IMG/VR virus record: IMGVR_UViG_3300032315_001715
Location: 248,001-312,000 of that record
Strand: one strand, 5' to 3'
Length of the DNA stretch: 64,000 bases
Position numbers and translations under genes: made by a program. The notes below the pieces were generated by a model. The model saw only the letters and a program-made list of their open reading frames with translations. It was not told the origin of the DNA and did no database searches. Positions 43,096 to 51,646 of the stretch are shown here, piece by piece (the stretch's first letter is position 1; the number at the start of each line of letters is the position of its first letter).

Positions 43096-44103
43096 TTACT
43101 TGTTGGCACGCACCGAAACTAGATTTTTTTCAAAGATATCAGTGCAGGCTTTCCATGTGAAACGCCTGCTGCTTTCCTCCACCATCTTTCGATCAAGATT
43201 TAAGCACACGTTTATGGCTTCGGAAAGATCGTCAGCTATACACCCGTCCACTCCGGGTGTGATGATATCGATCGGACCTGTTACCGGATATGCTGCTACC
43301 GGGGTGCCACATGCCATGCTTTCAAGCATCACCACGCCGAATGTGTCGGATCGGCTGGGAAATACAAACACGTCTGCATTGGCATAATATCGCGCTAGGC
43401 TGGCCCCTTTTTTATAACCAGCGAATATAACATCGGGATATTTAGATTTAAGAGTTTCAAGATACGGACCATCACCTACTAGTATCTTTGTTCCCGGTGT
43501 TTTGATCGAGCAAAAGTCATCAAGTCCTTTTTCGGGACTAGCGCGGCTAACACAAAGTAGAACCGGTTTTCCAGCAAGATTTGTTTTGCGCTGATCCGTG
43601 TTAAAAGTGTTATGATCGACGCCTCGGCTCCATATCACAAGATTGTTGAATCCTTTGCTGCGTAGCTCTTGTTCCATGGTAGCAGTTGTTACTAAAACTC
43701 GATGACTGAACTTGTGGAAGACTCGCATGAAAAAATAGCCCACCCTGACTGGTATTCCGTGGTGTATCTTGAGATATTCGGGAAACTTGGTGTGATAGCT
43801 GGTATTGTGCGGTATCTTCCTGTGCCTGACCTTGCAATACCACCTTGCGGCGATACCTAGTGGCCCTTCAGTGGCTATGTGTATGAAGTCAGGATTAAAA
43901 TTCTCTATCAATCTGCCAATTTTCCAAATATCCCATGATAATCTAACCTCAGGATATCCTGGCATCGGAATGGTACGGAAAAGTCCCGGTTCTATGACCT
44001 GTACCTCATATCCGCGTTGTTGCATTTCTAATACAGTGGCCCGCAAGGTAGTGACCACCCCGTTTACGTTATCCCAGGTGTCTGTTACCACTGTTAGTTT
44101 CAT
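43096..44103 (-). CDS. GT4 glycosyltransferase, Agt-like (glycosyl-diacylglycerol synthase)
   Basis: VTDTW.NVNGVVTTL, HIATEGPLG..AR, TSYHTKFPEY, WSRGVD, EKGLDDF, FVFPSRSDTFGVVMLESMACGTPVAAYPVTGP. Confidence 0.8.
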   Translation of the reverse strand: MKLTVVTDTWDNVNGVVTTLRATVLEMQQRGYEVQVIEPGLFRTIPMPGYPEVRLSWDIWKIGRLIENFNPDFIHIATEGPLGIAARWYCKVRHRKIPHNTSYHTKFPEYLKIHHGIPVRVGYFFMRVFHKFSHRVLVTTATMEQELRSKGFNNLVIWSRGVDHNTFNTDQRKTNLAGKPVLLCVSRASPEKGLDDFCSIKTPGTKILVGDGPYLETLKSKYPDVIFAGYKKGASLARYYANADVFVFPSRSDTFGVVMLESMACGTPVAAYPVTGPIDIITPGVDGCIADDLSEAINVCLNLDRKMVEESSRRFTWKACTDIFEKNLVSVRANK

Positions 44104-44876
44104 TTGTATGTTTCATAGATCTTCATTGATCCGTCCTCTTCCAACAATAATAGCTGAAATTCGCCATCATGCGTTTCGACAAGAACCGAGCATGTTTCTA
44201 CCCAATCGCCGTCGTTGGCATAAATCACGCCATTTATTGCTTTTATGGCAGGAGTATGTATGTGTCCGCATATGACACCGTGGAATCCATTGCTCTTGGC
44301 ATGTGCAGCCAAATGTTCTTCAAATTTGTAAATGAAATTAAGTGCTTGCTTGGTTCTACCTTTGACATATTTGCTGAGGCTCCAATAACCAAGACCAACT
44401 AGTTTTCTCATACGATGTATTAGACCGTTGCACATCAACAGGGCAGTATATGCACGATCACCTAGAATGCTCACCCATTTCCAATGCCGTGTTACCTGAT
44501 CGAATAGATCACCGTGTGTGACAAGCCATTTTCTACCATGTAAATCAACATGTGTGATTTGATTTGATATGGTGATATTTCCGGTCTTAAGACCATGCTT
44601 CAACCACGGACGAAGGAACTCGTCATGGTTTCCGATGATGTAGTGGATCTTTGTGCCTCTCTTGGCTTTGGTTAGAAGCCGGCGAACAACATTGCTGTGT
44701 TCTTGCGGCCAATGCCACCCCCTTGAGAGCTTCCACCCGTCGACGATATCCCCAACAAGATATAATGTATCCGAATTGTTGTTCTTGAGGAAGTTGCAAA
44801 GCTGGTCGGCTTTGCAACCTTTCGTACCAAGATGTATGTCTGATATCCAGATTGATCTATATTGCATTTTTCCCAT
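44100..44876 (-). CDS. plcP: PlcP-type metallophosphoesterase (phospholipase C; LpxH-like family)
   Basis: ISDIHLG, LYLVGDIVDGW, WPQ.H..VVR.LL.KA..GT, GNHDEFLR, HGDLFD, LGD.AY, YWSLS, GVICGHIH, NDGDWVETC. Confidence 0.8.
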   Translation of the reverse strand: MGKMQYRSIWISDIHLGTKGCKADQLCNFLKNNNSDTLYLVGDIVDGWKLSRGWHWPQEHSNVVRRLLTKAKRGTKIHYIIGNHDEFLRPWLKHGLKTGNITISNQITHVDLHGRKWLVTHGDLFDQVTRHWKWVSILGDRAYTALLMCNGLIHRMRKLVGLGYWSLSKYVKGRTKQALNFIYKFEEHLAAHAKSNGFHGVICGHIHTPAIKAINGVIYANDGDWVETCSVLVETHDGEFQLLLLEEDGSMKIYETYK

Positions 44877-46227: not shown

Positions 46228-47241
46228 TTAAAAACTGAATAGATCACCAAAACTGTTGGCTTCTTTGTTTGAATCTAAATCCCAGCGCAGCACGCCGAGG
46301 AGGTTTTTTACCTTCTTGTCTATCAATGCGGCTTCCATGGCCTCATCATCAAATGGTAACTGCTTGAACCATTCTGGCAAGGTAAGCTCATCGACCGGAT
46401 ATGCCACCGAAGTTAACCCGCTGGGATTTGGCCGAAGCTTGCAAACGATAACCTTAAATCCATCTTGGATTGGCATGGAGTAATGATCATTATGGATTTT
46501 TTTGAGCCTGTTCCAATTAATGGATGCAAGAACATGCCCGGGTATCATGGATTTCTTGCCTGGGTCTCCGCCCTTCCAATCAACCTTTCCCTGTAAGTCC
46601 ATCACGTTTTGATAATGGGTTATCTTGTTAGCACGTTTCGGTGAACCTTTCAACCATCCAGGCCAGCTACGGAATTCCTTACGGAATGCCAGTATCTTCT
46701 CATGAATGTCACCTTCTGTCGATCCGGTCAATACTGCCGTTAATATATCACTGAGAAAGTCTTGCACGATCTTAGGAGTATCACTGCGCTTGAGATCCAA
46801 TCCCATGGCCTTGATCTCGCCAGGCTTGCCGTTGAGATCCTTGCGCTTGCCTTCCTTGTCATAAATCAGCACCGCATAACGCTTCTTGGTGATGAATAAT
46901 CCCTTGTATGCACACAATTCTCGAGCAGCACGGATGATGGCACCGTTTTCTTCTGGACAATTGAATGCTTGGTTCATAAACTCAGGAAAGCTGTCGTTGG
47001 TCATGTCGCCGATGTTATCATACAGCTTGCTGACATTTTCCTTGGTCCACTCAAAGTCCTTGAACTCTGGCTGATCCTTCATCACTGGATATGCGCTGAA
47101 ATACCCAGAATTATGGACTAGTAATCCGTTAGCAAAAAAATATGGATGATTCGTATCCATTCCTACATCATATACATATTCGTCTTCAAATTCTCCAAGA
47201 TCCTCAACAGATGATATCTCTGTTAGGTAATGTTCCACCAT
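46228..47241 (-). CDS. polB: Family B DNA polymerase, C-terminal part preceded by C-intein
   Basis: After HN: SGYFS, GLFITKKRYA, KAMGLDLKRSDTP; AAGAGG RBS inside the endonuclease 3' end. Confidence 0.9.
   Translation of the reverse strand: MVEHYLTEISSVEDLGEFEDEYVYDVGMDTNHPYFFANGLLVHNSGYFSAYPVMKDQPEFKDFEWTKENVSKLYDNIGDMTNDSFPEFMNQAFNCPEENGAIIRAARELCAYKGLFITKKRYAVLIYDKEGKRKDLNGKPGEIKAMGLDLKRSDTPKIVQDFLSDILTAVLTGSTEGDIHEKILAFRKEFRSWPGWLKGSPKRANKITHYQNVMDLQGKVDWKGGDPGKKSMIPGHVLASINWNRLKKIHNDHYSMPIQDGFKVIVCKLRPNPSGLTSVAYPVDELTLPEWFKQLPFDDEAMEAALIDKKVKNLLGVLRWDLDSNKEANSFGDLFSF
47110..47241 (-). mobile_element. C-intein (44 aa) of a naturally split intein
   Basis: MVEHYLTEISSVEDLGEFEDEYVYDVGMDTNHPYFFANGLLVHN|S: block F VYD, block G FFANGLLVHN, Ser+1. 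Confidence 0.92.
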
Positions 47242-48266
47242 TTTACAACCTCTTTTATTACAGTGTTTGCATCTTTTATAAAGTCAGTTTCCCAGATTAT
47301 TTTTAACGAAAACCCCCTGGTAGTCGCAGCTTTTATCTTAGCATAATCATATGCCCAAATATTGTTAGCTGTCATTTTGAGATGAGGATGATAAAATGAA
47401 GATTCATACATCAATGGGTTACAATGCCAATAATCGCCATTGAATTCGATAATTTTCATACGTTGGCTATCTGTTATATCATAAAAACATGGAGATTGTA
47501 ATACATCGCTCCATATACAAAACTGATTGGTCTTTACTGTATATTGAAGTGATGCACCGAGACTACTTTCTACATATTCAATAAATGCGAGTTCGGCTTT
47601 AGAAGTATATCCTCTATTGTTTCTTTTGGATAAAATCTCTAAAGCTGTTGGTTTATCTACTGAATATTTTGACATTATCCAATCTATGTTAGAAGATTTA
47701 CCTTTTTCTCGATTGTAGTCGATCCATTTTTGGTATCCATCTAGTCCATATTTCTTTTCAAAATAATCTAAACTATTAGTGTATCGTTGTTTCTCAACAT
47801 AATTTTCCCATATTTGCAAGCCAACCTGCTCTCCATGACGAGCTATACATTTTTCCTCAGTTACGGCACGAGACCGGTTGAATTCGTTAAATTCCTCAAC
47901 AGACCAACCGTATTTTTCTTTCTTGGTTTCATAAAGATTTTTGACTCTTTGTTTTTCTCGATAAGATTCCCATTTCTGTAGGCCAATTTCGTTGCCATAT
48001 CTAGCTAGATATGTTTCTTTTGTCCGTCTGGTACTGTTTTGTCGTAGAAACTCAAATCTCTTAACAAGGTCAGTTAAGTCGTATGATACGAGATGACAAA
48101 ATGTATTATAGTAGCCGTTAATCAACGACACTCCGTTTGATATCATATGATCATACAACAGATGTATTTTTTCTACCTCACATTGAGAATATGATCGTTG
48201 ATTTGTAGCCGCTCTAAACCTAGCCGAGTTTATTACATCGTTGATGTTATCAATTTTCTTTGGCAT
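47223..48266 (-). mobile_element. Free-standing Vsr-like (PD-(D/E)xK) homing endonuclease between the polB halves
   Basis: Repeated YG...G...W..Y.EKQR units; SKAE..F; FYDI....KIIEFNGDYWHCNP; D..K...A..RGF.LKIIWE; TAAATA at 48289-48294. Confidence 0.85.
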
Positions 48267-48319
48267 GTTGTGCGCTCCTATTATGAGTTATTTATTCACA
48301 ATAGAAGCTGTATTGTGAC

Positions 48320-48667
48320 TCACAACGAAATTATTTTATCACCGACCGAAAGTTCCGTTGGCTTCTTGCTAACAAGCCGACCATCGTCGGTGACTACCAT
48401 GATCGAATGGTCAGCAGTGACGATCACGCTTTTGCCATCTGAGGTATTAACTCGATATTTCTTTTTAGATACCTTATGACGATATACGTAATTATACGTG
48501 GTCCAATCGGTGGTTTTCGAGGAATGATCATATCCAATTAATTTGATTTGGTCATTAACAGAATACTCTTTGTCTCCGTCATTCCAGAATAAACTACCAT
48601 TCAGAAACAGATCTTCGATGGTTCTTTTTCCGACTGAGGTTTCGATGATTGACGCAGAATCAACCGA
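48320..48667 (-). mobile_element. N-intein (115 aa) of a naturally split intein
   Basis: YGDTD|SVDSASII (block A, Ser1), VTADHSIMV (block B TxxH), KPTELSVGDKIISL*. Confidence 0.92.
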
Positions 48668-50566
48668 GTCAGTGTCTCCATAGATGCAGGAAATACCAAC
48701 ATGGTTGTAATCACCGGTGATGATCTCGTTGATCTTACCCTGCATGTGCTTGACGATGCAACGTCCACTTAGCGTAACGCTTTGTGCAACTCTAGGATCA
48801 TACCATCGACTACCGGGATTACCGATAGCGCCGTAGAGGCTGTTCAGCAGGATCTTCTTGATCAGCTGTCGTTGGTCATAGAAATCCGTAAGCTTTTTAT
48901 ACTCCGCTCGCTTGTCTGGATCGGTCTCCTCGTCTGCCATCTTGGCGTATTTCTTCATTTCAGCCTGTAGCTGCTTTCTCTCAGCATACCATCTAGCCAA
49001 CAATCCGGGTATGATGCCCTTTTTATCAAGCGTAAACAGCGTGCCATTTGCTGATATGATCAGCCTCTTGCCGCTTTTAAATACCAAATCATACAGCTCA
49101 CTTGCCGAAACCGTGGATGTTGACCCGTCCTCAAAATCCACGGTTATTGGCGTGAGATCCTGGTTCATCACCTGGTTGTATTCCAATGTGCCAAACATAC
49201 CGCTCCATGCATCAGCAAAGCTTTTCTTTTCCTGCTTCATGCGCTTGTAGATCAGCTTATCGGTGTATTCTGGACGTATATGGCCGATCACTGTTTCAGG
49301 GCTCATGTTTAGGGCACGAATCGCCGACGGATACAGTGAGTTGATATCAACACCACCGATCCAGTCGTGCATGCCTTCCTTGGGATCGGCAACGTATGCG
49401 CCGGCCACACCGGTAATGCCAACGTCACTGTCGTCATTATCATCGTCGTCGCCACCGCCATACGTTTCTCGTTCAGACTCGTCTCTCTTGCGATTTGGTA
49501 CCACCATTCCTAGATCATGTGCTTCATTAACAATGGCCTGATCGATCAATGCTACGGCACCCATGGTAGTTCCTAACAACACACAATTTTCATGTGCGAG
49601 GTTGCTGCTGAGCTCAATGAATTTGTTTTTTCGGTCAATTTTAACCAGCAGCATGACATCCTGCCGATTGTATTCGATAAACTTTGCAAAATCATTGTTA
49701 TAAAGCTTATCTAAGCTACCTTCATAGTGTATTTTCTTATCACCGACCTCATATTCTCCCACGAAATCAAGCCGATAACTATGCATCTCGTGATAGGTGT
49801 TCTTGCGGTAAAGCTGTAGATAATCCATGTGTATCCGACCGACGAGATCATATGTAATGGTATCTCGCCCGTAGCTTTCGTACTCACGTCGCTTTGGAAG
49901 TTTGTTCCACAGGCACAGCTTGCGGGTTTCTTCCTTACCAAGCAGTTGAACGATTCGATTGTGTATGTAAGGGATATCAAAGCCCTCGGAGTTCCAGCCC
50001 GATAGGATGTCAGCATCCTCAATCAAGTTGAGGAATACTTCCAACATCTCCTTTTCTGTGGCACACAAAACCGTGTCGTCAAAGTTGCTAACGATTTCCT
50101 GGGCATCCTCAACGCTTAATCCTTTCGGCTTGAGCACCATGGTGAAGTTGCGATCAAACCAGTTCAAATACACGGAGATAGCCGTGATCGGTGCAAATGC
50201 ATCATCAGGGCTTGAGAAGCCGCGCTCCGGGTCAAAGTCAACCTCAATGTCGAAAAATGCAAGATGCAGATCGGGACTTGGTGCTCCCTTGTAGTTGTCA
50301 TACAAGCAGCGGAATATTGGATTGATGTCGCTCTCATGTAACTGGCTTTTTGCCAGCATGCTGGTTTCGCGCTGGAATTCCTTGAGCTTGTTGGTCTGGA
50401 ATTTATCGCAAAGCTGTCCATGTATATTGGGAATCTTCCCCCGTGGGCTGGGCCAATATGCTATGTATTTTGCCGGGTATTCACGAAACTGGCGATTCCC
50501 GTTCTTGTCCCGTTCGGCAACAAGTATCTGATTTTTTTCTCGTTCCAAGAACGCATCTACATACAT
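48320..50566 (-). CDS. polB: Family B DNA polymerase, N-terminal part (3'-5' exonuclease plus motifs A-C) fused to N-intein
   Basis: FFDIEV, GWNSEGFDIPY, YNRQD, DINSLYPS, KILLNSLYG, YGDTD. Confidence 0.95.
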   Translation of the reverse strand: MYVDAFLEREKNQILVAERDKNGNRQFREYPAKYIAYWPSPRGKIPNIHGQLCDKFQTNKLKEFQRETSMLAKSQLHESDINPIFRCLYDNYKGAPSPDLHLAFFDIEVDFDPERGFSSPDDAFAPITAISVYLNWFDRNFTMVLKPKGLSVEDAQEIVSNFDDTVLCATEKEMLEVFLNLIEDADILSGWNSEGFDIPYIHNRIVQLLGKEETRKLCLWNKLPKRREYESYGRDTITYDLVGRIHMDYLQLYRKNTYHEMHSYRLDFVGEYEVGDKKIHYEGSLDKLYNNDFAKFIEYNRQDVMLLVKIDRKNKFIELSSNLAHENCVLLGTTMGAVALIDQAIVNEAHDLGMVVPNRKRDESERETYGGGDDDDNDDSDVGITGVAGAYVADPKEGMHDWIGGVDINSLYPSAIRALNMSPETVIGHIRPEYTDKLIYKRMKQEKKSFADAWSGMFGTLEYNQVMNQDLTPITVDFEDGSTSTVSASELYDLVFKSGKRLIISANGTLFTLDKKGIIPGLLARWYAERKQLQAEMKKYAKMADEETDPDKRAEYKKLTDFYDQRQLIKKILLNSLYGAIGNPGSRWYDPRVAQSVTLSGRCIVKHMQGKINEIITGDYNHVGISCIYGDTDSVDSASIIETSVGKRTIEDLFLNGSLFWNDGDKEYSVNDQIKLIGYDHSSKTTDWTTYNYVYRHKVSKKKYRVNTSDGKSVIVTADHSIMVVTDDGRLVSKKPTELSVGDKIISL

Positions 50567-50641: not shown

Positions 50642-51646
50642 TCAATGGTAATGGAGACCAGCTGCTATCGTTTCCTGATAGGTTCTGCTGCTGTACCATT
50701 TATATGAATCTAATATTATATCAGTATTGGTTCTTTTTGGTTTCCATCCAATTGAATCACCGATGGCAGAAATATCAGCAATGCTAATCGGAGGATCACC
50801 GGTGCGCCAATCACCATAAAAGTATGGTAGATTTTTTCCCAGCAGTGATTCCGATAGATCGACCATTTCCTGCACGCTAGTGCCAGCGCCGCTACCGAGA
50901 TTCATTGCATAGGCACCTGGATTGGAATCTAACCAATCTATGGATTGCTCAACGGCTTCGGCAAGATCCATGACATGGAGATAATCTCGAATTGCTGTGC
51001 CATCCTTTGTGTTGAAATCATTTCCAAAGATCTCAAGTTTCTTACCAAATGCTGCACTTTCCATCATTTTTGGTACCAAAAACGGTGCGTTCTGTAGGTG
51101 ACCTAGATCGTACAGATTGTGAGAACCGGAAACATTAAAAGTTCTAAAACTTATGCTGCTAATTCCATGCGCAATGTAACAATCGCGCAGTAGATATTCG
51201 ATGCTGAGCTTTGATCGGCTGTTTGATTTCAACGGTAAGAGCTGACAATTTTCATTTTTAGGAGAATCTAAATTAGCATATACATCGGCGGTGCTGAAGA
51301 ATATGAATTTATTGATACCAAATTCTGCTGCGTATTTTAACAGCTCAACCGATTTGATAACGTTGTTTTCCCAGATCGATATTGGATCAAGCAGGGATTT
51401 TGTCGGGCCTAACTCCTCCGCACAGTGTATGATGGTATCCGGTCGATAGCTGCTTATGGCCTGTAATACCACATTGCTGGTTAGATCTTCGTCGGCAAAC
51501 AAATCACAGTATTTTGTAATATGCGGTAACACCGCTGCTTTTTTGTCGATCAGCATCACGCTGTGATCGGTGGTGCTTTTTAGATGGGCAGCAATGTGGC
51601 TACCAATATAGCCACACCCTCCGGTTATGAAGATCCATTTGGTCAT
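50642..51646 (-). CDS. galE: UDP-glucose 4-epimerase-like extended SDR (catalytic Tyr replaced)
   Basis: ITGGCGYIGSH, FRTFNV.G, IFGNDF.T.DGT.IRDYLHV.DLA, NLGSG.G.SV; YxxxK reads NSRSK. Confidence 0.8.
   Translation of the reverse strand: MTKWIFITGGCGYIGSHIAAHLKSTTDHSVMLIDKKAAVLPHITKYCDLFADEDLTSNVVLQAISSYRPDTIIHCAEELGPTKSLLDPISIWENNVIKSVELLKYAAEFGINKFIFFSTADVYANLDSPKNENCQLLPLKSNSRSKLSIEYLLRDCYIAHGISSISFRTFNVSGSHNLYDLGHLQNAPFLVPKMMESAAFGKKLEIFGNDFNTKDGTAIRDYLHVMDLAEAVEQSIDWLDSNPGAYAMNLGSGAGTSVQEMVDLSESLLGKNLPYFYGDWRTGDPPISIADISAIGDSIGWKPKRTNTDIILDSYKWYSSRTYQETIAAGLHYH

Follow-up and report, generated by a model that had tools for sequence, protein, structure and literature searches.

Fractured genes, in which a conserved enzyme is encoded in two open reading frames (ORFs) that carry a split intein's halves, a free-standing endonuclease ORF lying between them, have been described from environmental loci (PMC2677866), from the Pseudomonas jumbo phages MIJ3 and PA5oct (PMC6892783), and for Aes123, CP21, LCGC14, and GOM-OPS-1 (PMC12707363, PMC11923092). 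Four relatives of the intein treated here have already been characterised biochemically (PMC12707363). The locus in question lies in a 64,000-nucleotide stretch of the IMG/VR virus record IMGVR_UViG_3300032315_001715 (positions 248,001 to 312,000 of that record), hereafter the window, where the gene for a family-B replicative DNA polymerase (polB) is interrupted within catalytic motif C. With a probability of about 85%, this interruption can be read as a composite selfish element, consisting of a split class-1 intein and a free-standing Vsr-like homing endonuclease gene, inserted in polB motif C of a jumbo phage. This reading draws on how the locus is built, on the retention of all catalytic residues, and on purifying selection; empty alleles also agree exactly with the predicted junction, and a recent, precise transfer has left its signature in the population.

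The first of the three ORFs (Table 1) encodes YGDTD at residues 629–633 and, directly after it, a Ser-initial N-intein that runs to KIISL at the stop codon. The third begins with the 44 residues of the C-intein, up to FFANGLLVHN, and continues with SGYFSAYPVMKD... (SGYFS), the start of the remaining polymerase. An earlier reading of this stretch, referred to below as the original prediction, had given the insertion point as YGDTD/S (the slash marks the site), followed by a 115-residue N-intein with a TADH block B, which proves exact to the residue in the ORF translations; the 347-residue endonuclease ORF that it placed between the halves, and the 44-residue C-intein and SGYFS that it placed after the endonuclease, are likewise found in the ORFs. 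Its assignment of the locus to the fractured genes is borne out by the two polB ORFs with intein halves, the endonuclease ORF between them, and both hallmarks described for such genes, namely a hairpin in the endonuclease 5′-untranslated region and an overlap of 6–69 bp with the downstream ORF (PMC2677866). The hairpin of the window covers the AGGAG of the endonuclease, and 19 nucleotides (47223–47241) are shared by the 3′ end of the endonuclease ORF and the start of the C-intein ORF.

A contiguous in-frame intein, one of the observations that the original prediction had named as fatal to it, was looked for in the sequence. The polymerase, endonuclease, and C-fragment ORFs lie in three different frames with one start each, and the frame beyond the N-intein TGA is closed by several further stops; neither a contiguous intein nor read-through is therefore possible at this locus. 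Shine-Dalgarno sequences precede all three starts, AGGAG in the case of the polymerase and the endonuclease and AAAGAGG in that of the C-fragment. Both polymerase fragments match the Pfam family DNA_pol_B (E 5e-29 for the N-extein, which also matches DNA_pol_B_exo1 at E 1e-21). Among PHROGs families, the N-extein matches phrog_262 (DNA polymerase, E 1.4e-155) and the C-extein matches phrog_1918 and phrog_262, both DNA polymerase. The phage has no close cultured relative: megablast found no match to the 4.3-kb region among 50,697 phage records, so that protein-level searches were needed; in these, the closest cultured polB sequences were those of Pseudomonas jumbo phages of the PA5oct/MIJ3 group, at 47–48% identity.

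All class-1 splicing motifs are retained in the intein. The nucleophiles are Ser1, directly after YGDTD, and Ser+1, directly after LVHN. The N-intein has a block B of the T-x-x-H form (VTADHS) and, in YRHKV, an NX motif in which His is preceded by Arg or Lys; its RH corresponds in the alignment to KH in Aes123 and to RH in PA5oct, and (R/K)H at this position has been reported as a signature specific to Ser1 inteins (PMC10189870). In the C-intein, YVYD...FFANGLLVHN keeps the block F Asp, the penultimate His of block G, and the terminal Asn. There is no Cys among the 115 + 44 intein residues, which confirms the claim that neither half contains one. The earlier description of a basic patch and an acidic partner, proposed to pair electrostatically, holds locally: the NX motif falls within the basic patch that had been flagged (RHKVSKKKYR), the C-terminal lobe of the N-intein that contains this patch (residues 56–115) has a charge of +5, and the C-intein has a net charge of −10. 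The N-intein as a whole, however, is neutral rather than basic, its N-terminal lobe carrying −5. In profile searches, the N-fragment matches Pfam Intein_splicing (PF14890) at E 1.8e-10 and 41.2 bits, above the curated cut-off of 35.8 bits, and the 44-residue C-half matches it at E 8.8e-4 and 19.5 bits, below the cut-off. The best match of the N-intein in the PDB is 9hth (E 1.3e-10), where the aligned stretch matches the Aes123 intein sequence; the C-intein matches the PolB16 cysteine-less intein (E 1e-5) and 9hth (E 0.0018).

Comparison with uninterrupted polymerases allows the predicted product of splicing to be checked against natural sequences. The protein search returned many split alleles of 740–750 residues, among them the N-fragment of the window itself (P0121, on a 452,799-bp contig), as well as many uninterrupted polymerases of 918–927 residues. 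The nearest of the latter are 86–88% identical across the N-extein (88% for P0126), and the C-extein is collinear with residues 632–924 of P0126. The predicted spliced junction, YGDTDSGYFSAYPVMKD, is exactly the polB sequence of intein-less relatives, which read ...CIYGDTDSGYFSAYPVMKD... / IYGDTDSGYFSAYPVMKD, identical to the joined exteins of the window. The motif C that splicing was said to rebuild, YGDTDSGYF, is thus what intein-less relatives encode. One intein-less locus (L090) has the same neighbouring genes, and its site differs from the flanks of the window at synonymous positions only.

The endonuclease between the halves is a member of the Vsr-like EDxHD homing family by its catalytic residues, its profile, and its fold. 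Such endonucleases are defined by a residue pattern (PMC2677866, PMC3239194) comprising equivalents of Vsr Asp51, His69, and Asp97 and a family-specific Glu at Vsr position 62. All 46 homologues of the middle ORF keep D263, E274, and H281, and nearly all keep D278 and D307 (string IIEFNGDYWHCNP). When a profile of the 46 sequences is searched against the PDB, E. coli Vsr ranks first (E 0.02), with D263, the GDYWH segment, and D307 aligned to Vsr D51, GCFWH (H69), and D97. In an AlphaFold2 model (predicted local distance difference test score 91.5), these residues fall in the catalytic domain, residues ~222–347, and the top three Foldseek matches are 1vsr, 3r3p_B (the catalytic domain of I-Bth0305I), and 1cw0, with probabilities of 0.91–0.98 and target template-modelling scores of 0.43–0.64. 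Homology to the “putative VSR endonuclease” of Aes123 and to its CP21 counterpart agrees with these results, and the earlier description of the protein as Vsr-like stands. The PHROGs match is to phrog_22677 (E 5.6e-48, function unknown), with a marginal match to a homing-endonuclease family (E 7.4e-4).

Residues ~1–221 of the endonuclease (47604–48266, minus strand) form an all-helical domain built from repeated modules of the form R(Y/H)G..(I/V)GLQ.WE.Y.EKQ. At least two repeats are clear, at residues 89–106 and 143–160, and strongly conserved positions are G91, Y102, N110, K115, N130, R133, G145, Y156, and Q160. This domain is presumably a DNA-binding or recognition module; NUMOD modules were sought in it, and no Pfam match was found at E values up to 10.

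The intein-endonuclease cassette is under purifying selection. Against a relative at 84–93% amino-acid identity (L012), the N-intein and the C-intein have ratios of nonsynonymous to synonymous substitution rates (dN/dS) of 0.07 and 0.06, respectively, and the endonuclease has one of 0.14. The cassette is AT-richer than its host gene: the GC content of the three cassette parts is 0.40, 0.34, and 0.34, versus 0.47 and 0.46 in the exteins. The distribution of the element on the polB tree is sporadic: of the 90 tips of a tree of N-exteins, 8 carry the intein type of the window, 20 a type at the neighbouring site, and 62 none, and these states need 23 changes, only slightly fewer than with shuffled labels (mean 25.7; 16 of 200 shuffles needed as few). 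Further copies of the intein or the endonuclease were sought in the window, as were transfer RNA genes, and none was found.

A record of mobility comes from another metagenomic phage in IMG/VR (L010). Its cassette is 98.8% identical in nucleotide sequence over exactly 47110–48667, which covers every codon of both intein halves and all that lies between them, whereas the flanking extein DNA is 85% identical upstream and 76–82% downstream, with the nearest mismatches 4 nucleotides upstream and 8 nucleotides downstream of the intein ends. This break in identity at the intein ends is what marks a recent and precise transfer of the entire intein-endonuclease-intein unit between diverged polymerases.

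Translation of the endonuclease is probably restrained by the 13-bp hairpin, whose 3′ arm holds the endonuclease AGGAG. Folding of 81 nucleotides around it (48255–48335) gives a minimum free energy of −20.7 kcal/mol (z −3.85), and none of 200 shuffled sequences is as stable; both stem arms are unchanged in three relatives (L004, L005, and L007). The TGA of the N-fragment is overlapped by another, small hairpin of 6 bp (GUUGUG/CACAAC, 48312–48326, minus strand), which lies just upstream of the one with the ribosome-binding site in its stem. The loop of the 13-bp hairpin was also considered as a T4-type late promoter, the element TATAAATA having been reported for some fractured loci (Dassa 2009, PMC2677866), and this was rejected: the loop reads AATAAATA and varies among relatives, and TATAAATA occurs once in the 64 kb, versus 2.1 expected occurrences. 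A sequence shared upstream of polB and the endonuclease, “CATAATAGGAG”, is not significant, 7 of 100 shuffles matching as often.

A mechanism can be proposed from these features. The element would have inserted between the Asp and Ser of YGDTD/S, and the two polymerase fragments would be translated separately. The positive C-terminal lobe of the N-intein and the acidic C-intein would associate and fold into a HINT domain, in which Ser1 and Ser+1 would splice via oxyester intermediates to yield a seamless polymerase of 926 residues (...YGDTDSGYF...). The endonuclease would be made from its own start behind the sequestering hairpin and, during co-infection, would cut intein-less polB alleles near the insertion site, with repair copying in the whole cassette.

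The last of these steps has the most serious competitor, namely that the endonuclease targets endonuclease-free intein alleles, or that it is inactive and the cassette spreads by ordinary recombination. This seems improbable. Relative to L012 and L004, identity along the cassette is mosaic, at ~80–87% in the N-intein and 93–95% in the spacer and the start of the endonuclease gene, with a dip to 70–80% at ~48070–48190 and then 92–100% to the end of the C-intein. Partial gene conversions within the element, which this pattern evidently records, would be in keeping with the competing explanation: the block of 92–100% identity spans the 3′ two-thirds of the endonuclease gene and the C-intein and excludes the N-intein, and synonymous divergence from L012 is 0.31 in the endonuclease versus 1.16 in the N-intein. 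Contiguous mini-inteins that lack an endonuclease also occur in the clade, at the neighbouring site. The L010 cassette, however, moved as a whole with its breakpoints at the intein ends, and the catalytic residues of the endonuclease are intact in a gene under purifying selection. Endonuclease similarity, moreover, tracks intein type and insertion site rather than host polymerase: one locus with 79% extein identity has only 34% endonuclease identity (L055), and another with 65% extein identity has 48% endonuclease identity (L014).

Metagenomic relatives bear on the remaining alternatives. IMG/VR holds 388 loci that encode relatives of the endonuclease; 80 of these were fetched, and the counts of layouts and inteins given here rest on them. 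A fractured polB with intein halves on either side was present in 79 of the 80, which makes the arrangement a common one in that database. From them, 48 distinct split inteins were extracted, inserted at DTD/S in 12 cases and at YGD/TDS in 36; every one has Ser1, Ser+1 or Thr+1, RH, and T..H, and nine contain no Cys at all.

Phage enzymes that are assembled from fragments without splicing exist (PMC3045599), and the halves in the window, known from sequence only, might be a non-splicing module that joins the polymerase fragments by tight non-covalent dimerisation, in the way that protein-interaction remnants join the fragmented NrdA of phage Aeh1. Such an arrangement is very improbable here. 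Ser1, TADH, the NX RH, the block F Asp, His-Asn, and Ser+1 are all kept, in agreement with all 48 relatives, and dN/dS in the intein halves is 0.06–0.07. Moreover, a HINT domain of ~160 residues that stayed in motif C would separate the catalytic aspartates from the strand that follows and would be expected to disrupt the active site. The idea that errors in assembly or sequencing split a contiguous intein with a nested endonuclease domain by frameshifts can be dismissed despite the metagenomic origin of the contig, given the three frames with one start and one Shine-Dalgarno sequence per ORF, the 100% identical copy of the locus in two IMG/VR contigs from different samples (L009 and L011), and the recurrence of the layout in other assemblies (at least four, all independent, from a close relative), in the fetched IMG/VR loci, and in the cultured phages Aes123, KP13-7, and PA5oct; the layout is therefore not an assembly artefact.

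Several points weigh against the composite-element reading. Splicing and the dependence of replication on it, cleavage by the endonuclease and the site that it would cut, and regulation by the hairpin are predicted from the sequence. Pfam searches with the endonuclease, whole or as the C-terminal domain alone, gave no match at E values up to 10, and a single-sequence search of the PDB gave chance matches only, so that the family assignment needed the 46-sequence profile and the predicted structure; the Foldseek E-values are themselves weak (~0.3), and support comes from rank, probability, and residue alignment. The hairpin stem is identical in all aligned relatives and hence lacks covariation. 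Electrostatic steering by a net-neutral N-intein would rest on one lobe only. The mosaic relative to L012 and L004 means that not every transfer moved the whole unit. Finally, inteins of this type are frequently aggregation-prone and poor splicers as purified fragments (PMC11923092, PMC12707363), so that splicing efficiency in vitro can be neither assumed nor predicted from the sequence.

Table 1. Features of the fractured polB locus; positions are counted from the first letter of the window
Feature	Position	Strand	Length	Description
polB N-fragment ORF	48320-50566	minus	748 aa	
polB N-extein	48668-50566	minus		residues 1-633; exonuclease and palm domains; ends in catalytic motif C YGDTD
N-intein	48323-48667	minus	115 aa	Cys-free; Ser1; NX RH; block B TADH
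N-intein TGA stop codon	48320-48322	minus		
RNA hairpin	48274-48308	minus	13 bp	inside the 53-nt spacer
Endonuclease ORF	47223-48266	minus	347 aa	free-standing homing endonuclease
polB C-fragment ORF	46228-47241	minus	337 aa	
C-intein	47110-47241	minus	44 aa	Cys-free; net charge -10; block F VYD; block G NGLLVHN
polB C-extein	46228-47109	minus	293 aa	begins at Ser+1 (SGYFSAYPVMKD...); stop codon included

Related polymerases carry further variants of the interruption. A metagenomic polymerase of 1085 residues (P0164) contains a contiguous mini-intein without an endonuclease, which ends in Lys-Asn instead of His-Asn. It was considered as a contiguous ancestor of the window intein and rejected, the site being YGD/TDS, two residues upstream, the end KN, and Cys present; it could represent the YGD/TDS allele before fracture by an endonuclease. 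In L012, polB is interrupted again near residue 545 by a 330-residue ORF (L012:1425–2417, opposite strand) with a Vsr-like EIDGEYWH motif and no evident intein halves. This second break is lacking in the window, and the many polB N-fragments of 553–569 residues in the protein search suggest that it is common. In three further loci (L024, L025, and L066), the residue after YGDTDS is C or L (as in DTDSCVG), ~10 codons upstream of the N-intein match. This hints at a third register of insertion, shifted by one residue and with a putative Cys1, in which case inteins would occupy three neighbouring sites of motif C, YGD/TDS, DTD/S, and DTDS/.

The polymerase gene of the window is flanked by sugar-modifying genes (43096–44876 and 50642–51646, minus strand), which encode an NAD-dependent epimerase/dehydratase, a calcineurin-like metallophosphoesterase, and a GT4 glycosyltransferase. 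The order of epimerase, polB, and two small downstream ORFs is kept in the intein-containing L004 and the intein-less L090; of these two, only L004 has the metallophosphoesterase and a full-length glycosyltransferase.

The main value of the locus is practical, its intein being a candidate for use in protein ligation. Few efficient split inteins without Cys are available: in the literature consulted, only CL and CLm, both derived from Aes123, and LCGC14 are described as highly efficient (PMC12707363), and LCGC14 proved orthogonal to CLm. The window intein is about as diverged from Aes123 as LCGC14 is and is naturally free of Cys; it is therefore a reasonable candidate for an orthogonal third system. 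The original prediction was right to describe it as a new candidate cysteine-less ligation tool, although many such candidates exist, with nine Cys-free inteins among the 48. A tentative and rather unlikely prospect is that it will prove efficient and free of aggregation, as well as orthogonal to CLm and LCGC14 alike, and thereby supply a third independent thiol-free handle for ligation. In that case, the window and L010 would also form an unusually clean natural record of a split intein and a free-standing endonuclease homing together with almost no co-conversion of the exteins. The locus is also a further well-documented example in which an essential enzyme of replication needs repair by predicted protein splicing, and the related contigs supply population evidence for precise movement of the cassette between phages whose polymerase genes are ~80% identical. 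For the study of how fractured genes spread, the precise transfer seen in L010 is a helpful side result.

Among described systems, the biochemically active PolB1 intein of Aeromonas phage Aes123 (JN377899), the parent of the engineered CL and CLm, is closely similar in design, as had been proposed. The insertion site DTD/S is identical, within YIDTD/S there and YGDTD/S here, and the halves are homologous (~40%). Both inteins have Ser1, Ser+1, Cys-free halves, TADH, and an NX motif (KH there, RH here), both are split at the typical position (120/39 residues there, 115/44 here), and both enclose homologous Vsr-like endonucleases that overlap the downstream ORF. They differ in sequence, at 35% identity for the N-intein, 46% for the C-intein, and ~40% overall, with 28.6% for the endonuclease; in the +2 residue, Val there and Gly here; and in their hosts, a T4-like phage there and a jumbo phage related to PA5oct here. 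Aes123 has, in addition, a gp43A/gp43B split of polB that is not present in the window.

The inteins of MIJ3 and PA5oct (PMC6892783) have the DTD/S site, Ser1, Ser+1, and Cys-free halves in common with the window intein, which is 40% (N) and 49% (C) identical to that of PA5oct. In these phages, the intervening endonuclease has 560 residues and is annotated “Hef-like” (HNH in the MIJ3 paper), and the C-intein ORF has an N-terminal extension of ~40 residues, for a total of 85. CP21 PolB1, LCGC14 PolB2, and GOM-OPS-1 PolB2 (PMC12707363) occupy the same gene and belong to the same element class, with fragments of 115–120 and 42–46 residues. The endonuclease of the Campylobacter phage CP21 is the best cultured-phage match to that of the window (33.7% identity), and the inteins of the two are ~39% identical; as a check on such values, the identity of Aes123 and CP21 was computed as 55%, versus a published 52.4% (PMC12707363). 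LCGC14 and GOM are clearly distinct from the window intein. According to machine-read supplement text, which is error-prone, the LCGC14 construct shares YVYRHKVSK with the window, and C24S and C57S substitutions are present in the constructs of LCGC14 and GOM, whereas the window intein is Cys-free as found. In Klebsiella phage KP13-7, the interruption lies two residues earlier, at YGD/TDS, a different allele, as is P0164.

With the fractured genes of Dassa 2009 (PMC2677866) and with I-Bth0305I (PMC3239194), the window endonuclease shares the D...E...D..H...D constellation and the Vsr-like fold, and with the former the locus shares a conserved enzyme gene in two ORFs with intein halves and a free-standing endonuclease ORF between them. 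It differs from the Dassa 2009 set in its host site, polB motif C having been studied later, and apparently from the EDxHD family in its N-terminal domain, which has helical repeats of its own and gave no Pfam or NUMOD match. The window locus is a real new example of an arrangement already published, and the known workings of such elements are unchanged by it.

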